Below are positions 1 to 10,197 of a stretch of DNA of 10,197 bases, piece after piece. A program made the position numbers and the translations under genes. Within the stretch, counting starts at the first letter, position 1. Each line of letters opens with the position of its first letter. The DNA comes from Neoechinorhynchus agilis (taxonomy: Eukaryota > Animalia > Acanthocephala). The notes below the pieces were generated by a model. The model made no database searches, was not told where the DNA came from, and saw only the letters and a program-made list of their open reading frames with translations. Location: positions 1 to 10,197 of the forward strand of contig JBMGUZ010000081.1 in assembly GCA_051530055.1 (NCBI GenBank), read 5' to 3'.

Positions 1-20
1 TATTGCCATAAAATTCGGAT

Positions 21-119
21 ACGACGATGCTCGAAACCTCCATTTAACACTTTAGGGCATCGAATGCGAATTTTGATGGTAGCAATAATATTTTCCTGAG
101 CTTTTTATTGCTCATCCAT
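21..119. repeat. Dispersed duplicate of 8459-8574 (non-TE-looking flank sequence)
   Basis: 21-96 aligns to 8459-8534 at 72/76 identity. After an indel, 100-119 (gctttttattgctcatccat) is identical to 8555-8574. Confidence 0.9.
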
Positions 120-2618: not shown

Positions 2619-2673
2619 GTACTAACAAACTGATGATGAACCCGACGAGCTTCGAAACGTCTTTAATAAATAC
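2619..2673 (+). ncRNA. Minimal type-I hammerhead ribozyme motif (PLE-type), orphan
   Basis: CTGATGA core 2630-2636, extra T, stem II GAA(2638-40)/TTC(2651-53), GAAA 2654-57, palindromic stem III ACGT 2657-60, cleavage after C2661. Stem I is aaa/ttt plus distal gta/tac. AATAAA at 2665-2670. Confidence 0.7.
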
Positions 2674-3181: not shown

Positions 3182-4130
3182 ATTGGCGTGTGTCCGGTTT
3201 GCGATAAGTCTTTAAATTAACAAAGTTTAGGTTTTGTTTGCCAACGGTCCCAGGGATCTCCGCTGTAGCGGGTCTGGTTCTCCACCACAATCCCTGGGAC
3301 CTCTCAGATCACCACTGACTCTATTTCGATACCTGATATAGTGCGGGTTCTGCTCAGGAACGTCCTGAAACGGATCCCAAGGGGCGCAAGACATCAGGTC
3401 GCCAAAACATTCACGGGATTCATTAACGATTGCCTCCAAAATAACTGTGCGCCATCATTGACATGGCTCTTCGCATTCCCGCGCTTAGTCTTTTGTACCA
3501 GTGATGATTCTGAAGTGTCGTTGACTCCTTCGAACAGATATTTCACAATTTCGAAATGAAATTTCGCGAGGTTAGTAAGGGACCCACGAAGGAAGGGTTT
3601 CTTTGCCGTTTTGAGGGATTTTCAGAACGCCCTTTACTCTTTCAATAGAGAATGTATGTTCTGTACAATTAGGGATCACGTACCAGAAGCCTTCCAGTAT
3701 TTTCTCAATGCCTACGGGACCGCGACTCCTTTGCTTTTTGAAGACCACCTCATTTGGTCCGAAAGAGGAGTGCAGCATGGAGATCCTCCCGGTCCAATCG
3801 CATTCTCCCAACAGTAAATCCAATAGCGCACTCTCTCCATTCCAGCTCCAGCGCTTGGTATTTGGATGCGGCTACGCTCGGAGGTGATTCCTCCGTTGTA
3901 CTGTGCGATTTGGAGACGCCGATTAGGGAGACCTCGAGAATGGACATAGAGCTCAGACTCCAGAGCAACTCAGCCTCTTGGGTAGTTGCGTATTTGATTC
4001 AAATGTGGAAGCTGAGATCGGCCGCATCATACCGAAACTTTCGTTGCTGTGTGATAGGGTCAGCGCTCTCTCGGCTCACGAAGCATTATTTCTGATAAAG
4101 AACGCACTCTTTACCCCGAAATAGGCCTTC
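3182..4130 (+). mobile_element. CRE-like (REL-type) non-LTR retrotransposon, left part, decayed
   Basis: N-terminal Zn-finger CPVC...GPRDLRCSGSG (frameshifted); VLKRIPRGAR; RDFQNA; WSERGVQHGDPPGPIAFS (3767-3787); WYLDAATLGG (YLDD to YLDA, 3859-3870); LLGSCV...AHEALFLIKNALFTPK. Several frameshifts and apparent internal deletions near 3550 and 3955. The true 5' start may lie further left. Confidence 0.85.
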
Positions 4131-5384
4131 GATCACGATCTTATTGGATTAACTATACTTTTTAATTCCATATTGCAAATAGGACATCCTCCAAAAGCTT
4201 GGCTGGAGAACAAAACAATTCTCCTACCAAAGAACAATTCGAGCTCTCGATCATATACGGATCCAAAATCTGTGCGGCCGATCACAATATCGTCGATTTT
4301 ACTACGAATTTTCCACCGTATAATACTCGCAAGATTACGAACAGCATGCCCTGTGTCTGGACATCAAACAGCGTTTGACAGTACATCATGCTTATCAAAC
4401 ATCCTTATATTAAGGAGTCTTATGAAGCAAAAGCGTTACGAAAAGAAACCGCTCCATATAGCGGTACTAGACATTACGTCCGCATTTGACACGGTAAGTC
4501 ATGAAACTGTGTCCAGAACATTACGAGAGCGCGACTGCCCTCCTTATTTACGGCGATATCTTATGGAGGTGTTAATGTCTTCGCACACCCGGCTACATCT
4601 ACCTAACTCGAAACCGTCGGACCCTATTTATTTTCGCCGAGGCGTTAAGCAAGGTGATCCTCTGTCGCCATTTATTTTTGCATTATGCATTGATGATGCG
4701 CTTCAGCAGGTGGACAGGTTAGGTCTGGGTAGCTTAATAAGATCTCGTCGTCTAAGTCAGCTTGTATATGCAGACGATATTCTCTTGCTTTCAGATCAGA
4801 AAAAAGACTTACAATCCATGATTGATCGGCTATCATCTCTTTTAAAGGAAAAGGATTTACATTTTTCGCCACACAAATGTAGGACTTACTCCCAATCGTA
4901 CATTAACGGCAACAAAATAATTGCACACGACCCTCAATTCGAAATCGATGGAATGAAGCTGAACACAATATTAAACGGTGATCCAGTGCAGTATCTCGGA
5001 GGCACTCCTTGGATGCCTACAACAATTGACTCCATCAAGAATGATATTACTCATTTATTCTTAAAAACCAAGGAAGCAGGCCTAAGACCAACACAAGCAG
5101 CGCATCTAATTAACGACTACGGACTGCCCCAAATTATAGCAAAACTTCAGGCAGCTCATGACATTTCCGTATCAAACATTGATACAGTCGAACAATTCTG
5201 GCGGACCAAGCTGAGGAAACTTTTATTTTTACCTCACTTTCTGAACGATGGTGCAATATTCCTGCCCCTGAACAAAGGTGGTCTAGGATACAAATCTATT
5301 AAACAATCAGTCATGGATATGCGACTAAAAGTATACAAACGCAAAGAAACGTTGCTCCGAACTCGAAATTTTATCGGAATATAA
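4131..5384 (+). CDS. Reverse transcriptase domain of the R2-like element (5'-truncated; frameshifts near its end)
   Basis: PKAWLENKTILLPK, RPITISSILLRIFHRI, LDITSAFDTVSH, RGVKQGDPLSPFIF, intact YADD (4767-4778), KC, YLG, LPLNKGGLG. The frame is open from 4125, upstream of the track start at 4173. Confidence 0.85.
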   Translation, partial: DHDLIGLTILFNSILQIGHPPKAWLENKTILLPKNNSSSRSYTDPKSVRPITISSILLRIFHRIILARLRTACPVSGHQTAFDSTSCLSNILILRSLMKQKRYEKKPLHIAVLDITSAFDTVSHETVSRTLRERDCPPYLRRYLMEVLMSSHTRLHLPNSKPSDPIYFRRGVKQGDPLSPFIFALCIDDALQQVDRLGLGSLIRSRRLSQLVYADDILLLSDQKKDLQSMIDRLSSLLKEKDLHFSPHKCRTYSQSYINGNKIIAHDPQFEIDGMKLNTILNGDPVQYLGGTPWMPTTIDSIKNDITHLFLKTKEAGLRPTQAAHLINDYGLPQIIAKLQAAHDISVSNIDTVEQFWRTKLRKLLFLPHFLNDGAIFLPLNKGGLGYKSIKQSVMDMRLKVYKRKETLLRTRNFIGI

Positions 5385-6231
5385 AAAAACTGTCCAAAAA
5401 TATTTCGAAGGACTTGGTTCGACTGAAGAAATTATTGATACCGCGCGCGCTAAGGCACTGCATATTTCGAGTAACATCAATAAGTGGACGAAAGCGAAGA
5501 CGCAATCGCAAGGAATTGAATCGTTCACAAATGGAAACTTCGAACGAAAATCTTTATCATTCCGATACAGACAAGACAGCCACAAACATTACAAGGAATT
5601 GGTAAAGATGCGATTCCAATTGCTCGAAGTAGGCGCGAATTTGGCAACAATAGACCACGACAGGACGAGGAAATGTCGACATTGTTCAGCCGAAGCTGAA
5701 ACACAAATGCATGTGCTAAACAGCTGCCCCTACAGTACGGGCATGATGATAGAGCGCCATGATGCCGTACAAAATCGATTCATATGGGCTCTAAACAAGA
5801 GATGGGGTTCTCGGTATGAAGTACTAACCGAGAATCGTATCCACGATCCTGGAGGGCAGCTGTACAAACCGGATGCTATATTGGTCGATAGAAACGCGAA
5901 AAAAGCAATCATAACTGACTTTGCCGTATACTATGAAACTACAAATGAACGGGCAGAGGAAATTATGAATGCGAAGGAGGACAAATATAAGGCCATTAAA
6001 GAAGAGGTAGCCATAAAGCTGGGATTTGCTCCTCACCGCGTATCGACAATGGGCCTCGCCGTCGGCTCAAGAGGCACATATTCAAATGGAATAACAAGGC
6101 GGCTCAATATCATTGGTCTATCCTCAGGCACCGCACTAAACATGGCTTCAACGGCAGCGGAAAAAAGCCTCAAGACATTCCACGTCTTCATGAGCAGAAG
6201 CCGAAGGACGAATCATCTTTATACAACTTAA
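5329..6231 (+). CDS. C-terminal region of the R2-like ORF: CCHC zinc knuckle + restriction-like endonuclease
   Basis: The frame of track ORF 5599..6231 is open from 5329: KWTKAKTQSQG, CRHC(5674)...HVLNSC, ERHDAV, KPD (5866-5874), DFAVYYE, KEDKY, GSRG. It joins the RT frame by a +1 shift somewhere in 5329-5384. Confidence 0.85.
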   Translation, partial: KYTNAKKRCSELEILSEYKKTVQKYFEGLGSTEEIIDTARAKALHISSNINKWTKAKTQSQGIESFTNGNFERKSLSFRYRQDSHKHYKELVKMRFQLLEVGANLATIDHDRTRKCRHCSAEAETQMHVLNSCPYSTGMMIERHDAVQNRFIWALNKRWGSRYEVLTENRIHDPGGQLYKPDAILVDRNAKKAIITDFAVYYETTNERAEEIMNAKEDKYKAIKEEVAIKLGFAPHRVSTMGLAVGSRGTYSNGITRRLNIIGLSSGTALNMASTAAEKSLKTFHVFMSRSRRTNHLYTT

Positions 6232-6239
6232 AGAAAAAG

Positions 6240-6949
6240 AGGAAAGCAACATTCTTCAAGCATAAGGAAGGATTGGCTGAGCTCGACGACAAGGTGAGGG
6301 CTTGTCTCGAGCGTATTTTAAATGTACAGCTCTCAGATGAGGCGTGGCGACAATCTTCATTGTCTGTGTCATCTAAGGGAATGGGCATTCGGGCGCCAGT
6401 AGACCTTGCCTTGCCATCCTTTCTTGGATCGTTTGAGGGGAGTCAACCAATAGCGAAGAAAATTCTGAGGGAAAAGTTTTGTCTTGGCCAAGAATTTGTG
6501 GTGGCAGTTGAGGAATGGTACCAGCATGCAGGCGCTAACCATGTTCCCGTGAATGGCCTCAGACAGTTGATCTGGGAAAGGCCCTTCGCCGCGAGAACTC
6601 ACAGCTCTCTACTTTCAGGTTTTCGCGATCGGGTCGTCCGAGCTAGATTGTCGGCAATTTCGACACGAAAATCGGGGCGTGGTTGGAGGCTGTACCTCTG
6701 GCATCCTTGGGAACTCTTCTCACTGATGAGGTAACGAGGATCGCAGTTTCCTTAAGACTTGGTCTCCCGATAAGCACGCACCATCGCTGTCGATGTGAGT
6801 CTTTGGTTGATGATTTTGGGCGATACGGTTTCGTTTGCCAAAAGTCAGGAGGAATGTTCTCACGCCATTCTGAGATCAATAGCGTAATTTCTTGGGGTTG
6901 AGAACGGCGAACTTCCCCAACATCTTGGAACCCACCAATCTTTGTCGAC
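6240..6949 (+). mobile_element. CRE-like element, right part (thumb, CCHC knuckle, start of REL), 3'-truncated
   Basis: RKATFF...LDDKVRACLERILNVQLSDEAWRQSSLSVSSKGMGIRAPVDLALPSFLGS; frameshift; EAVPLASLGTLLTDEVTRIAVSLRLGLPI..HRCRC..VDDFGRYGFVC..SGGMFSRHSEIN; frameshift; LEPTNLCR. It stops before the expected DGKRPDG. Confidence 0.85.
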
Positions 6950-7499: not shown

Positions 7500-7666
7500 C
7501 CAGAAAGTGCCATCCAAGTTAATCTTAATGTTGACATCTAGGAATGGTAAGGCAACCCATTATTCTTGTTCGTGTGTCCATTGTATGTGCTTGTTCATCC
7601 CAATAAGTTCTTTGTTCAGTTGGGGACCGTGCTCCCCATTAAACAAGGTGCCCCACATCAGGTCGT
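7500..7666 (-). pseudogene. Inverted PLE RT segment (from the DD motif to the RT7 region)
   Basis: Minus-strand frame not in the ORF track: (.)DLMWGTLFNGEHGPQLNKELIGMNKHIQWTHEQE*WVALPFLDVNIKINLDGTF. This matches the PLE pattern N..H..I.FT.E.E...LPFLDV. Confidence 0.8.
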
Positions 7667-7667
7667 T

Positions 7668-8368
7668 CCTTGGATCTCTGCCCAACCACAAAAATACAAG
7701 ATATCAAGGATTCGATCGCTATTTATCAGGGCATATCGATACTGCTCAGACGATGGTACCCCTCAAGAACGAACCGGATCGACTATGGAATATCTTCAGA
7801 AAAGGTGGGTACCCAAAGAAATACATCGCAAGAGCGAGGAAGGATGCAAGGCTAATTAAAACAAGGGAATCAATGGCAACTGAGGAAAAAAGATACATTG
7901 TAGTCCCATGCATAAATGGGGATTGGAATTCAAAGATGGAATCTCTAATCAAACGACTTGACACAAAAAAGGAATGCAAATTATATTGGACAAAAAAGGG
8001 CGTACACAAAACAGTCTCTTAGGACCCGAAAAAGAGGAAATGATCAATTCCCACACCTAGACTGCGATCAATCTTATATCGGACAAACATATAATATCAA
8101 GAGACGATTGACGAAACATCGAAAAGCAGTCAGCAAAATTACGAATACGAACTCGACAATAGTTCATCACATCATAGATAATGGACATAGGATCAATTTT
8201 GAGAGGGCTGAAATCCTTGCGAGGAACGGAAACCGTAGGGACAGGACTGCGATGGAGGCCACTTTTATTCAACAATTAAACACATCCACGCATAATAAGG
8301 CCGATTACACCCTCAACCTACGGGTACCGCCCGATATATTCACGAGGGGGCAAAAGATTCAACAGTGA
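7668..8368 (+). pseudogene. PLE thumb + linker + GIY-YIG endonuclease, frameshifted
   Basis: PWISAQPQKYKISRIRSLFIRAYRYCS; shift at the C-run 7759-7762; LKNEPDRLWNIFRKGGYP...YIVVP; stops, then shift near 8056; LDCDQSYIGQT (YIGQT 8075-8089)...RRLTKH...HHIIDNGHRINF...MEATFI. Confidence 0.85.
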
Positions 8369-8377
8369 CCGTGTGAA

Positions 8378-8438
8378 TGTATTTTAGATTCTGAAGAAGG
8401 CCAGCGAGCAGGCCGAAAATTCAAGTTGATAAAATACA
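8378..8438 (+). ncRNA. Minimal type-I hammerhead ribozyme at the PLE-1 3' end
   Basis: CTGAAGA 8391-8397, extra A, stem II GGCC/GGCC with loop AGCGAGCA, GAAA 8415-18, palindromic stem III AATT 8418-21, cleavage after C8422. Stem I is tt/aa plus tgtatttta(8378-86)/taaaataca(8430-38) around an internal loop. Confidence 0.85.
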
Positions 8439-8458
8439 ATCTTTCATTGCCAAGTCCT

Positions 8459-8574
8459 ACAACGATGCTCGAAACCTCCATTCAACACCTTAGGGCATCG
8501 AATGCGAATTTTGATGTTAGCAATAATATTTTCCAGATATTATTTTTGGAAAAAGCTTTTTATTGCTCATCCAT
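8459..8574. repeat. Duplicate of 21-119; spacer between PLE-1 and PLE-2
   Basis: Direct alignment to 21-119 (72/76 identity, then 20/20 after an indel). Confidence 0.9.
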
Positions 8575-8575
8575 T

Positions 8576-8709
8576 CCATTTTTGATGGAAACAAGCCGGA
8601 TTACAGATTGAAGCTTCGGATTCCACCCGATAAGATCAACGTGTGATAGTTTTTGGCATTCCCTGCCCCTCCTTTTTTAGAATTGCTGAAGAAGATCCTA
8701 GTTTGGATC
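8576..8709 (+). repeat. 5' pseudo-LTR of PLE-2 (direct repeat of 10065-10197; true right end unknown)
   Basis: Near-identical to 10065-10197, differing by one substitution and a short pyrimidine-tract change. It contains the last EN codons, the stop and the HHR, as expected for a PLE pLTR. Confidence 0.92.
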
Positions 8710-8723
8710 GAAATATTCAATTC
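8680..8723 (+). ncRNA. Minimal type-I hammerhead ribozyme in the PLE-2 5' pLTR
   Basis: Stem I gaattg(8680-85)/caattc(8718-23); CTGAAGA 8686-92; extra A; stem II GATCC/GGATC with loop TAGTTT; GAAA 8710-13; palindromic stem III ATAT 8713-16; predicted cleavage 8717/8718. AATAAA at 8724-8729. Confidence 0.88.
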
Positions 8724-8764
8724 AATAAATTAATTCTTTCTTCAAATTCCCATATCTCAAACAT

Positions 8765-9922
8765 ATGGATTTTATCTTCAACAGTATAAAGCAGATATAT
8801 GGGGAGTCTGCTCTTCAAGCGGTAAGGGAATTGGACAAATTTGGTCTGAGGAATATGAGATCACTGATGGCTCTTGATTTCTTAAGGGACTGCAAAAACT
8901 ATGGTGTTTTTCCAAGTTTCCTTCATCTAAGATCACCTGCTCTTGGTTTTGACAATTCGCTACGGAAAAAGTACATGATGGAGCGCATGCTTGATAATAC
9001 TATTTCATGTATGGTCAACAATGTCAAAAACAATTCGATCTCCTATAATAACTGCATAGAGAATGTCAATAGATGGATAAGTTCAGAATATTGTCAACTT
9101 GTAGAGTTCTGTGTCAAAGATCACATGGATATCGAAGAAAAAGCTATTTTGAATCGCCATATTCGAAAGCTTAATCGACTGACCCAGAATAGATTTTATA
9201 CTGCTTCTGATCACAAGAATGAGGTATATAATATGTCGAACATTATTCTGCCAGACGAAGTACTGGAGCTACTTAGTTATGGTCCCGATTTCATTCCTTA
9301 TACGCCACCTAAGAAGTTTGAATACAGAATCAAGCTAGAGAAACTTGCAACACGACTCGAATATGATAATCTGAATATACCAACTTGGAAGATAGAACAG
9401 TACTATGATTCAGTTATTAAAAATAGGAATGTTAACTCTAACATCTCCCGGAGAATGCAGCGTGGAATGGACCTTCTCAGGGACATCAAGGATGTAGTTT
9501 TGGTCAAGATCGATAAGGGGTATGGATATTGTATTGCGAATTCACAACAATATCGAGAAGCGGGTCTCGAAATCCTCAACGGTAATGAGTTTGAGCAGCT
9601 CAGTACATGCCAAACAAAAAGTCGTGAAAGGGAATTCAACTCATTTATTTTGAGATTGAAAAATCAAGGGAAGCTTCCTCCTGATGATTATAGAGCACTT
9701 CGCTCTACTGATGCAAAAACGCCCAGACTACACCTTAACGCCAAGGTACACAAAAACCCTATTAGGTTTCGACCTATAGTGGCTGCCCACTCGGCATTCT
9801 GTACTGATATGTCTCGAAAAATAGCAGATATGCTACGTAGTATAATGGGATCTTCCGATAATACTATTGATAATGGTAAGGATTTCATATCAAGACTTCG
9901 ATCGGACAAACGAACGATCTAA
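8765..9922 (+). CDS. PLE polyprotein N-terminal region + RT domains 0-2 (truncated by deletion)
   Basis: FLRDCKNYGVFPSFL; VYNMSNIILPDEVLELLSYGPDFIP; KIDKG; PRLHLNAKVHKNPIRFRPIVA. No stop over 385 codons. Real homology ends at ~9900. Confidence 0.85.
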   Translation: MDFIFNSIKQIYGESALQAVRELDKFGLRNMRSLMALDFLRDCKNYGVFPSFLHLRSPALGFDNSLRKKYMMERMLDNTISCMVNNVKNNSISYNNCIENVNRWISSEYCQLVEFCVKDHMDIEEKAILNRHIRKLNRLTQNRFYTASDHKNEVYNMSNIILPDEVLELLSYGPDFIPYTPPKKFEYRIKLEKLATRLEYDNLNIPTWKIEQYYDSVIKNRNVNSNISRRMQRGMDLLRDIKDVVLVKIDKGYGYCIANSQQYREAGLEILNGNEFEQLSTCQTKSREREFNSFILRLKNQGKLPPDDYRALRSTDAKTPRLHLNAKVHKNPIRFRPIVAAHSAFCTDMSRKIADMLRSIMGSSDNTIDNGKDFISRLRSDKRTI

Positions 9923-10135
9923 ATAGGAGAATTCAGGAGCACAGGCGATCGATAAATAGAAAGAATGGCATGAGTTCTGCAGTGGTCTCACACGTTGTGA
10001 ATACTGGACATCATATCGAGATTCAGTCGTGTGGTCATGGAAGCTGTGTATATCCAGTCGTCATCCATTTTTGATGGAAACAAGCCGGATTACAGATTGA
10101 AGCTTCGGATTCCACCCGATAAGATCAACGTGTGA
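9901..10135 (+). pseudogene. C-terminal half of the PLE-2 GIY-YIG endonuclease
   Basis: From 9901: IGQTNDLNRRIQEHRRSINRKNGMSSAVVSHVVNTGHHI. After a frameshifting deletion near 10020: FSRVVMEAVYIQSSSIFDGNKPDYRLKLRIPPDKINV* (stop 10133-10135). Homologous to track ORF 7958..8368. Confidence 0.85.
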
Positions 10136-10197
10136 TAGTTTTTGACATTCCCTGCCTCTCTCTTTTAGAATTGCTGAAGAAGATCCTAGTTTGGATC
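10065..10197 (+). repeat. 3' pseudo-LTR of PLE-2 (cut by the window end)
   Basis: Direct repeat of 8576-8709. Confidence 0.92.
10168..10197 (+). ncRNA. Second copy of the PLE-2 hammerhead motif (incomplete in window)
   Basis: gaattg-CTGAAGA-A-GATCC-TAGTTT-GGATC is identical to 8680-8709. The GAAA and stem III would lie beyond 10197. Confidence 0.7.

Follow-up and report, generated by a model that had tools for sequence, protein, structure and literature searches.

Among Penelope-like elements (PLEs), insertion as partial tandems that form pseudo-LTRs (pLTRs) with a hammerhead ribozyme inside them is the rule (PMC8557442; PMC4209133). The features of the minimal PLE hammerhead have been listed (PMC4209133), and in vitro these ribozymes are reported to cleave at very low rates, even as dimers (PMC4209133, PMC6765202); the efficient cleavage as dimers stated in the preliminary description of the present locus overstates this literature. 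Metazoan non-LTR retrozymes, in comparison, are non-coding. Their monomers measure 170-400 nt and lie in multi-copy tandem arrays, their hammerheads are canonical and make loop-loop contacts, and they occur as circular RNAs (Cervera & de la Pena 2020, PMC7229834). On the strength of pLTR phylogeny, a 2026 preprint infers that ribozyme-flanked non-autonomous elements originate from PLEs, without an intermediate stage having been caught (10.64898/2026.07.22.740005). Internally deleted PLEs are also on record: Chlamys-3_cRei is a transcribed PLE copy with a 2.8-kb internal deletion, and the MRC1-type elements are non-autonomous Chlamys elements (PMC8557442).

Herein, we describe a PLE copy at the end of a 10,197-nt stretch of DNA (the window). 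To judge from homology, the region is a copy of a canonical PLE with a C-terminal endonuclease (EN), designated family B, whose closest relatives are found in the acanthocephalan Neoechinorhynchus agilis. It is probably a young, dead, internally deleted copy. The features are listed in Table 1. A direct repeat of 134 nt, with three substitutions and one indel between its copies, flanks the open ORF. The repeat consists of two segments (8575-8677 / 10064-10166 and 8672-8709 / 10160-10197) with 96-97% identity, spaced by 1489 and then by 1488 nt, and the divergence between the pLTRs by substitutions is 2.2%. Over its first ~70 nt the repeat corresponds to the 3'-terminal part of the EN coding sequence, with stops at 8644-8646 and 10133-10135. 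The two pLTR copies of the preliminary description are thus a direct repeat, as stated, but one that is EN-coding rather than non-coding LTR over these ~70 nt. A repeat that begins inside the EN coding 3' end is expected of a 5'-truncated upstream tandem unit, and partial tandem insertion accounts for the pLTRs.

The upstream pLTR is such a 5'-truncated unit. It contains the last ~23 EN codons (stop TGA), a hammerhead and a 41-nt leader (8724-8764) before the ATG; its reading frame ends ...SSIFDGNKPDYRLKLRIPPDKINV before the stop and is homologous to the EN C-termini of families A and C. The 1488-nt series of repeat, ORF and repeat is visible for 1.13 units within the window. C8686 and C10174 do lie 1488 nt apart, and both are the C of CUGAAGA. 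The bracketing of the ORF by two hammerheads had been presented as special; however, an ORF between two repeats with one hammerhead each is the standard canonical PLE partial tandem (PMC4209133, PMC8557442). Immediately upstream lies a copy of a different family, A, with remnants of the thumb and linker, a GIY-YIG EN (7958-8368), its own hammerhead (~8378-8438) and a tail to 8574 that recurs at window positions 20-119. The family B unit adjoins this tail at a common TCATCCAT / TCCAT microhomology. The locus lies within a nest of decayed transposons.

Table 1. Features of the family B copy and its upstream neighbor (window coordinates)
Feature	Position	Strand	Basis
PLE family A copy, 5'-truncated, frameshifted, different family (context)	7560..8574	+	
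Upstream pLTR, PLE family B	8575..8764	+	Direct repeat with 10064-10197
Complete minimal (helix-III-less) type I hammerhead	8680..8723	+	Sequence, fold, descriptor, cross-family comparison, published min-HHR features (PMC4209133)
Intact 385-aa ORF	8765..9922	+	Open for 385 codons; homology to full-length PLE proteins
Deletion junction 1	9900..9901	+	L001 read-through; P0017 residues ~400-712 without counterpart
GIY-YIG endonuclease middle fragment (IGQTNDLNRRIQEHRRSINRKNGMSSAVVSHVVNTGHHIE)	9901..10017	+	Frame 1; Pfam and PLE endonuclease alignment
Endonuclease C-terminal fragment (SRFSRVVMEAVYIQSSSIFDGNKPDYRLKLRIPPDKINV, stop)	10013..10135	+	Frame 2
Downstream pLTR, cut by the window end	10064..10197	+	Direct repeat with 8575-8709

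The ORF keeps the native start codon and is free of stops, as first described. It represents the N-terminal ~45% of a PLE polyprotein, stopping just before motif A of the reverse transcriptase (RT), and comprises the PLE N-terminal region (a GxKF/Y-like GPDF and the DKG motif KIDKGYG) and RT motifs 1-2 (AKVHKNPIRFRPIVAA). In alignments, GPDF, KIDKGYG and AKVHKNPIRFRPIV have counterparts in full-length PLE proteins. An exhaustive search of a representative protein library with the ORF yielded 1274 matches. In PLE proteins of 800-870 aa, residues ~10-400 align to ORF residues ~5-380, and full-length PLE proteins match the ORF only through their residues ~30-400; for protein P0017, residues 32-399 map to window positions 8780-9901 (tblastn). 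Protein P0002 is 95% identical to the ORF in the exhaustive search. The word-indexed protein search returned a single distant match and missed P0002; the index is therefore lossy for this genome. The ORF had no significant match in Pfam or among PDB sequences. Neither the word-indexed nor the exhaustive protein search with the ORF returned a protein carrying the junction C-terminus, and no protein record was found for the exact 385-aa product, nor for the products of ORFs of 320 and 207 aa. Beyond the deletion junction the ORF runs on for seven out-of-frame codons (RSDKRTI and stop), and the protein terminates in ...FISRLRSDKRTI.

The junction was located by comparison with L001, an N. agilis sequence 90% identical to window 9066-9903. 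L001 is collinear with the window up to 9903, then continues for ~930 nt through RT motifs A, B and C (...DFISRLR/SNLGSTYTMVSADVTSLFTKIP...GLAMGSPLAP...VRYVDDTFIF...), and rejoins the window at 10020. Since L001 reads on from the same point into the RT motifs, the breakpoint at 9900/9901 is confirmed. Approximately 310 codons (~920 nt) are lost there, namely RT motifs 3(A)-7, the thumb, the linker and the GIY / Zn-knuckle half of the EN. The ORF ends with DFISRLR ahead of motif A, and the RT catalytic core (motifs 3/A, 4/B, 5/C with YxDD, 6 and 7) and thumb are absent. As the RT core is absent here and present in L001, the copy is a defective member by descent and not a functional one. The comparison with L001 and with full-length PLE proteins thus upholds the identification as a Penelope derivative devoid of the RT core and thumb.

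From 9901 onward the sequence reads IGQTNDLNRRIQEH..., which is the YIG half of GIY-YIG. The proposed fusion to the second half of this domain exists as a junction, L001 marking where it lies; however, it is out of frame. The frame shifts from 2 to 1 at the junction, and since the EN middle fragment is in frame 1 and the ORF in frame 2, the fragment is not translated from the ORF. What remains of the EN is its middle, from YIG to GH.I, and its C-terminal part in a different frame, the GIY and Zn-knuckle part being gone. The middle fragment matched Pfam GIY-YIG below the curated cut-off (E = 0.0046); its alignment with four PLE endonucleases, in which the I, G, T, R, H and H columns are kept, is convincing. 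The PLE endonuclease alignment also bears out the second lesion suspected earlier in the EN remnant, a frameshifting one: at ~10017-10021 the frame changes, and ~11 codons fewer are present than in family C. Both termini are kept and the internal coding region is gone, an arrangement like that of short internally deleted elements (SIDEs). Canonical splicing was rejected as the origin of the deletion, because the deleted segment starts with CTCTAA and not with GT.

The hammerhead in the first repeat has a stem I of 6 bp (8680-8685 / 8718-8723, GAAUUG/CAAUUC), the C3-A9 core CUGAAGA (8686-8692) followed by an extra A at 8693, a stem II of 5 bp (8694-8698 / 8705-8709, GAUCC/GGAUC), G12-A14 as GAA (8710-8712), the palindrome AUAU (8713-8716) and U8717 as H17. 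Cleavage is predicted between 8717 and 8718. The minimal PLE core (C3U4G5A6N7G8A9, G12A13A14, A15.1-U16.1 and an H17 other than G) is complete, and all published hallmarks are present: the extra nucleotide between A9 and G10.1, the G10.1-C11.1 pair and the palindromic 15.1-16.1. Stems I and II fold at -12.8 kcal/mol (z = -3.1, RNAfold). The core pattern CTGANGA...GAAA alone was discarded as evidence, with 3 matches against 1.3 expected (not significant), and a strict structural descriptor of the minimal hammerhead was therefore used instead. The descriptor found one site in the window and none in 1000 dinucleotide shuffles. No hammerhead family of the Rfam covariance models matched the window at E <= 10. 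This is expected, as helix III is part of the Rfam models and is missing from minimal PLE hammerheads, and is no argument against the motif. Across 4-5 PLE families of the same genome, stem II differs in sequence and is always complementary (GAUCC/GGAUC, GUCCA/UGGAC, GGCC/GGCC, GAACC/GGUUC), and the palindrome varies (AUAU, AAUU, ACGU).

The visible part of the second hammerhead (10168-10197) comprises the 5' strand of stem I, the core and stem II. The two hammerheads had been called identical. This holds for the 30 of 44 nt inside the window; the remainder, GAAAUAUU and the 3' strand of stem I, lies beyond 10197, and the repeats as a whole differ by the substitutions and indel given above. 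The GAAAUAUUCAAUUC of the second copy falls past the window end; the family pLTR in L001 does go on with GAAATATTCAA. The structure of a double-hammerhead dimer is non-nested across its two strands; folded without constraints (RNAcofold), the dimer has its minimum in a domain swap at -26.6 kcal/mol, compared with -25.6 kcal/mol for two monomers.

L001 is the sole other family B copy reached, and it is without the deletion; searches for family B proteins through the RT core and through the linker and EN found none. Two further loci, L002 and L003, carry a different PLE family with 65% nucleotide identity; in L003 (family C) the RT and EN are in one frame over 10232-12040, within a tangled PLE cluster that also includes partial copies in inverted orientation (9714-9968 and 12060-12401). 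Neither the junction nor the hammerhead had any match (0) in metagenome scans, which are uninformative because the collections do not include this host. We assume that the deletion junction is single-copy. The dN/dS of the ORF, which the preliminary description had proposed to compute, is 0.40 between the window copy and L001 (9 synonymous and 14 non-synonymous differences, p = 0.04), which shows past constraint on the N-terminal region; whether this acted before the deletion or later cannot be assigned. The ratio was set aside as evidence of selection on the deleted form, because the divergence includes active ancestors. With family C as outgroup, the non-synonymous changes I to T and P to Q are private to the window copy.

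The dead-copy reading, a fallback in the preliminary description, is the better supported one; the functional reading preferred there, in which a retrozyme-like non-autonomous unit is mobilised in trans and releases an RNA of 1.49 kb, finds no support here. The locus consists of a 5'-truncated unit upstream, which forms the pLTR, followed by a 5'-complete unit and by the start of a further repeat, and the hammerhead in each repeat is the normal one of the family. The copy in the window has lost ~920 nt between RT motif 2 and the EN YIG motif and bears a small frameshifting EN lesion; the deletion would have arisen through either template switching in reverse transcription or a later genomic deletion. 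As a result of the RT and EN losses, neither a reverse transcriptase nor an endonuclease is encoded, and the copy is incapable of autonomous transposition. If the copy is transcribed from the pLTR, the hammerheads could in principle pair via their AUAU palindromes, and the paired hammerheads could excise a 1488-nt RNA, from C8718 to the equivalent of U10205. That the N-terminal ORF is still open is most likely due to the youth of the copy, and selection for a truncated protein is not required. If a 1155-nt ORF evolved unselected for the time given by the pLTR divergence, it would be intact with a probability of ~0.08-0.23, lower if the copy is older. An intact ORF is thus compatible with youth; as an objection to the dead-copy reading, this 8-23% chance is not comfortably high. 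Most PLE insertions are 5'-truncated. A 5'-complete copy with an open ORF of 385 codons is therefore uncommon, which also speaks against a dead copy.

The main idea of the preliminary description would be a propagating non-autonomous subfamily, in which the RT-less 1.49-kb unit is excised, perhaps circularised, and reverse-transcribed in trans by full-length B or C elements. The N-terminal protein might then persist by helping its own RNA, analogous cases being short internally deleted R2 elements or half-LINE elements that keep the first ORF only. We consider such a subfamily unlikely. The unit does keep both termini, the hammerhead, the native start codon and an intact ORF, and the same genome also contains near-full-length relatives (a family C element in L003, a B-family RT in L001). 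There are also precedents: non-autonomous Chlamys PLE derivatives with pLTRs and head-to-tail arrays are documented (PMC8557442), retrozymes have been proposed to derive from PLE pLTRs (10.64898/2026.07.22.740005), and trans mobilisation is known of R2 derivatives that carry a ribozyme and an internal deletion (PMC3414825). However, no second copy bearing the junction was found, the one relative seen, L001, being without it, and the 1.13 visible units are no more than any PLE insertion shows. Moreover, the stretch of EN left between the lesions is ballast of no use to the unit, as is typical when a deletion happens by accident and not of a streamlined parasite. The truncated protein ends in the RT fingers, between motifs 2 and 3, and is thus unlikely to be an independent folding unit. 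It is a shade less likely still that the unit is a founder or member of a propagating RT-less PLE subfamily that encodes an N-terminal/RT1-2 protein, is excised by its hammerheads and mobilised in trans by full-length B or C elements, and so represents a coding intermediate between autonomous PLEs and non-coding retrozymes.

Host co-option, in which a truncated regulatory protein (for instance, a dominant-negative inhibitor of PLE transposition) is kept by selection, would agree with the intact ORF and with a dN/dS below 1 against L001. Selection on active ancestors explains that dN/dS signal, though, and the private non-synonymous changes in the window copy, its position among decayed transposons and the lack of any orthologue or paralogue with the junction C-terminus in the protein searches make co-option extremely improbable. 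The joins at 9900/9901 and ~10019 could also have been made by the assembly, through a collapsed or mis-joined tandem or inverted PLE cluster. Tandem and inverted PLE insertions are known to trouble assemblies (PMC8557442), L003 holds a tangled cluster with inverted partial copies, and two odd joins fall within 120 nt. Yet neither join is at a repeat boundary, no long common sequence is present that could mislead an assembler, a related assembly is chromosome-scale (16.4-Mb contig), and the flanks are collinear with L001 on both sides; an artefact is very unlikely.

As it stands, the finding matters little: retrotransposon copies left defective by internal deletions are commonplace, and for PLEs a hammerhead in either pLTR is the norm. 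Its modest value is as a clean, well-formed example of the minimal PLE hammerhead in Acanthocephala, and in the fact that several PLE families of one genome share a single hammerhead architecture whose stems covary. If the junction proved to be multi-copy, it would document the origin of ribozyme-flanked non-autonomous elements from PLEs.

Compared with retrozymes (PMC7229834; Li et al. 2026 preprint, 10.64898/2026.07.22.740005), the unit is likewise RT-less, AT-rich, delimited by type I hammerheads and tied in evolution to PLE pLTRs. It differs in its length of 1488 nt, its 385-aa ORF and endonuclease debris, its 1.13 units visible before the window end and its minimal hammerhead, in which helix I is open without a loop 1 and helix III is missing. 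By the published definition (PMC7229834), it departs from retrozymes in most of the defining features, namely size, non-coding status and the canonical type I hammerhead. Chlamys-3_cRei and the MRC1-type elements resemble it in having an internally deleted ORF and a retained pLTR (presumably with promoter and termini), with the potential for pLTRs and head-to-tail arrays. Unlike it, they belong to green algae and to the N-terminal-EN clade and are mostly hammerhead-free, and amplification is documented for MRC1, whereas the window unit is known from one copy. The R2 SIDEs (Eickbush & Eickbush 2012, PMC3414825) likewise derive from an autonomous retrotransposon by internal deletion and retain a 5' self-cleaving ribozyme as well as the 3' end on which reverse transcription depends. 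They are multi-copy, in contrast to the single known copy here, their ribozyme is HDV-like, and R2 is a retrotransposon of a different class.

The closest likeness is to the canonical PLEs with a C-terminal EN (Penelope/Poseidon-Neptune type; Cervera & de la Pena 2014, PMC4209133; Craig et al. 2021, PMC8557442). Unlike them, the window copy is without RT motifs 3-7, the thumb, the linker and the first half of the endonuclease, and since the linker is the clade-diagnostic part, the likeness holds at the level of canonical PLEs. At that level, it extends to the N-terminal GxKF/Y-like and DKG motifs, RT motifs 1-2, the GIY-YIG remnant, the direct pLTRs formed by partial tandem, the insertion next to another PLE and, in each repeat, a type I hammerhead of the minimal form, in which A9 is followed by an extra nucleotide and helix III is palindromic.

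The window DNA is eukaryotic and rich in transposons, and the Penelope-like element (PLE) unit examined here, assigned to family B, is flanked by direct repeats at 8575–8709 and 10064–10197 (96–97% identity), spaced 1489 nt start to start and 1488 nt past a 1-nt indel. When the two repeats were aligned together with a related locus, they showed three substitutions and one indel across their common 134 nt; the indel and one of the substitutions were assigned to the first copy, and the other two substitutions to the second. Between the repeats, an ORF at 8765–9922 starts with ATG and runs for 385 codons with no internal stop. Pfam and PDB searches with this ORF returned nothing significant, an indexed protein search gave one weak match, and an exhaustive phmmer search gave 1274 matches, in which the first ~400 residues of 800–870 aa proteins aligned to the whole ORF. 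The multiple alignment identified the ORF as the PLE N-terminal region, with a GxKF/Y-like GPDF, a DKG motif (KIDKGYG) and RT motifs 1–2 (AKVHKNPIRFRPIV), ending at DFISRLR directly before RT motif A. The close matches were P0002 (95% identity) and P0003 (60%), both hypothetical proteins of the acanthocephalan Neoechinorhynchus agilis; exact look-ups found no record for the window's own ORF products.

The preliminary description placed an RT fusion to the second half of a GIY-YIG domain at 9900/9901. The left breakpoint was confirmed by L001, an N. agilis chromosome locus with a decayed, 5'-truncated family B copy: it matches window 9066–9903 at 90% identity, runs ~930 nt further past the ORF match (...DFISRLR/SNLGSTYTMVSADVTSLFTKIP...QKDGLAMGSPLAP...VRYVDDTFIF...FLDV...VYRK) through RT motifs A to 7 and beyond, and meets the window again at 10020. 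Right of the breakpoint, frame 1 reads IGQTNDLNRRIQEH...NTGHHIE, a stretch that matches PLE GIY-YIG endonucleases (EN) over their YIG-to-GH.I portion, as described. Since the ORF is in frame 2 and the EN remnant in frame 1, translation past the junction gives RSDKRTI and then a stop. The second, frameshifting EN deletion was also recovered: the frame changes at ~10017–10021, where ~11 codons are absent relative to a copy of another PLE family, C, at locus L003. Frame 2 then encodes the EN C-terminus, (S)RFSRVVMEAVYIQSSSIFDGNKPDYRLKLRIPPDKINV, up to a stop at 10133–10135. Since the repeat starts at 10064, its first ~70 nt belong to the 3' end of the element's coding region, as expected of an "LTR" formed by an upstream tandem unit truncated at its 5' end. 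Relative to the PLE protein P0017, ~310 codons were lost, and an intact unit would measure ~2.4 kb.

Both C8686 and C10174 are indeed the C of CUGAAGA, one per repeat copy. Of the second hammerhead, 30 of 44 nt (10168–10197) are in view and identical to the first, while its GAAAUAUU and helix I 3' strand fall past the window end; the pseudo-LTR (pLTR) of the L001 copy continues with GAAATATTCAA. The described identity of the two hammerheads thus stands for the visible part and is likely for the whole. The minimum-energy fold (RNAfold) consists of helices I and II (−12.8 kcal/mol, z = −3.1). Rfam models did not detect the motif at 8680–8723. By itself, the core pattern is not uncommon in the window; a descriptor demanding all hammerhead features found exactly one site there and none in 1000 dinucleotide-preserving shuffles.

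Hammerheads of the PLE type in the window and in compared N. agilis loci
Feature	Sequence	Position	Strand	Details
Hammerhead inside first repeat (family B)	Window	8680–8723		GAAUUG-CUGAAGA-A-GAUCC-UAGUUU-GGAUC-GAA-AUAU-U-CAAUUC; helix I, 6 bp; helix II, 5 bp, closed by G10.1-C11.1; core C3–A9, then one unpaired A; G12–A14 present; self-complementary AUAU replaces helix III; H17 = U8717; predicted cleavage between 8717 and 8718
Hammerhead of family A	Window	~8378–8438		
Hammerhead	Window	2630–2670		
Hammerhead	L002	1597–1625	−	
Hammerhead	L003	9714–9743	−	

The same architecture occurs in other PLE families, namely in family A, in the motif at 2630 and in others at L001–L003. In all PLE-type hammerheads detected across the window and these loci, one unpaired nucleotide (A or U) lies between A9 and G10.1, and a self-complementary tetranucleotide (AUAU, AAUU or ACGU), differing among hammerheads, replaces helix III. 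Helix II covaries between families, its sequences varying yet staying complementary. This shared architecture, with differing complementary helices and palindromes, supports a conserved RNA element. The claim of efficient cleavage as dimers was too strong for the literature consulted (PMC4209133, PMC6765202), where in-vitro rates are reported as very low even for dimers. The third hammerhead-like motif of the window, at 2630–2698 (CUGAUGA-U-GAACC...GCUUC-GAA-ACGU-C), has an 82%-identical counterpart at L003 6269–6347 (−) with a perfect helix II (GAACC/GGUUC); in the window, no PLE coding sequence turned up next to the motif.

An ORF between two repeats, each with its own hammerhead, is the standard layout of canonical PLEs, which often insert beside one another (PMC8557442, PMC6765202). 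The bracketing by two hammerheads noted earlier is inherited from the family and did not arise with the deleted derivative. Here the unit adjoins a decayed PLE of family A, meeting its tail at a short common TCATCCAT/TCCAT. At this join (8567–8580, TCATCCAT/TCCAT), TCATCCAT is in both partners and TCCAT occurs twice, which points to a 5' join by microhomology or to a short duplication at insertion. The family A pLTR tail occurs twice, at 20–119 and 8458–8574 (8.4 kb apart, 90% identity, with a 21-nt exact block), so the window start probably lies within a further family A repeat, and the B unit starts exactly where the second tail copy ceases to match the first. Elsewhere in the window, an R2-like non-LTR element at ~4140–6240 (RVT_1 E = 7e-36), whose downstream ORF carries a CCHC knuckle together with a PD-(D/E)xK-like motif of restriction-type endonucleases, appears nested in another, decayed LINE (~3240–4130 and 6240–6900); YLDD and thumb-like pieces of that LINE flank it on both sides. 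An unclassified ~690-nt repeat at 337–1025 matches L001 1038–1725 at 91% identity.

The sole other family B copy seen, L001, keeps the RT core, and no additional proteins of family B came up in protein queries with the family RT core or with linker plus EN. The junction and the hammerhead each had 0 matches in metagenome scans, as expected; the collections do not hold the host. At L003 10232–12040, a near-full-length family C relative has RT and EN in one frame, so potential helper elements are present, and no more can be claimed. It belongs to a tangled family C cluster (L003 9714–12690), in which an inverted 5'-truncated copy with its hammerhead lies upstream; near 12060 an inverted N-terminal fragment breaks the near-full-length copy, and beyond this fragment come the EN C-terminus and a degenerate hammerhead.

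Divergence of the pLTRs corresponds to ~1.1% per lineage. With a stop-creating share of substitutions of 3–4.5% (from the ORF's own codon content) and an assumed indel-to-substitution ratio of 0.1–0.2 (~0.2 in the L001 copy), an unselected ORF would still be intact with probability ~0.08–0.23, or 0.01–0.07 at twice the age, a wide interval based on four events. Between the window and L001, dN/dS was 0.40 (9 synonymous and 14 non-synonymous differences; p = 0.04), a value that owes as much to selection on active ancestors as to any other cause. Polarised against family C, the window copy has at least two private amino-acid changes. None of these observations requires selection on the truncated protein, which would end inside the RT fingers.

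We regard the region as probably a canonical PLE copy that is young and non-functional through internal deletion, arranged in the usual partial tandem and equipped with a well-formed minimal hammerhead; the dead copy offered earlier as a fallback is the better-supported reading. That the unit represents a propagating non-autonomous PLE subfamily is improbable, and no datum in this analysis supports it. Such a subfamily, if real, would have parallels in R2 SIDEs (PMC3414825) or in the Chlamys elements that are non-autonomous (PMC8557442), and would agree with a recently proposed descent of retrozymes from PLE pLTRs (10.64898/2026.07.22.740005). The deleted PLE copy itself departs from the retrozyme definition in size, coding content and hammerhead type (PMC7229834).
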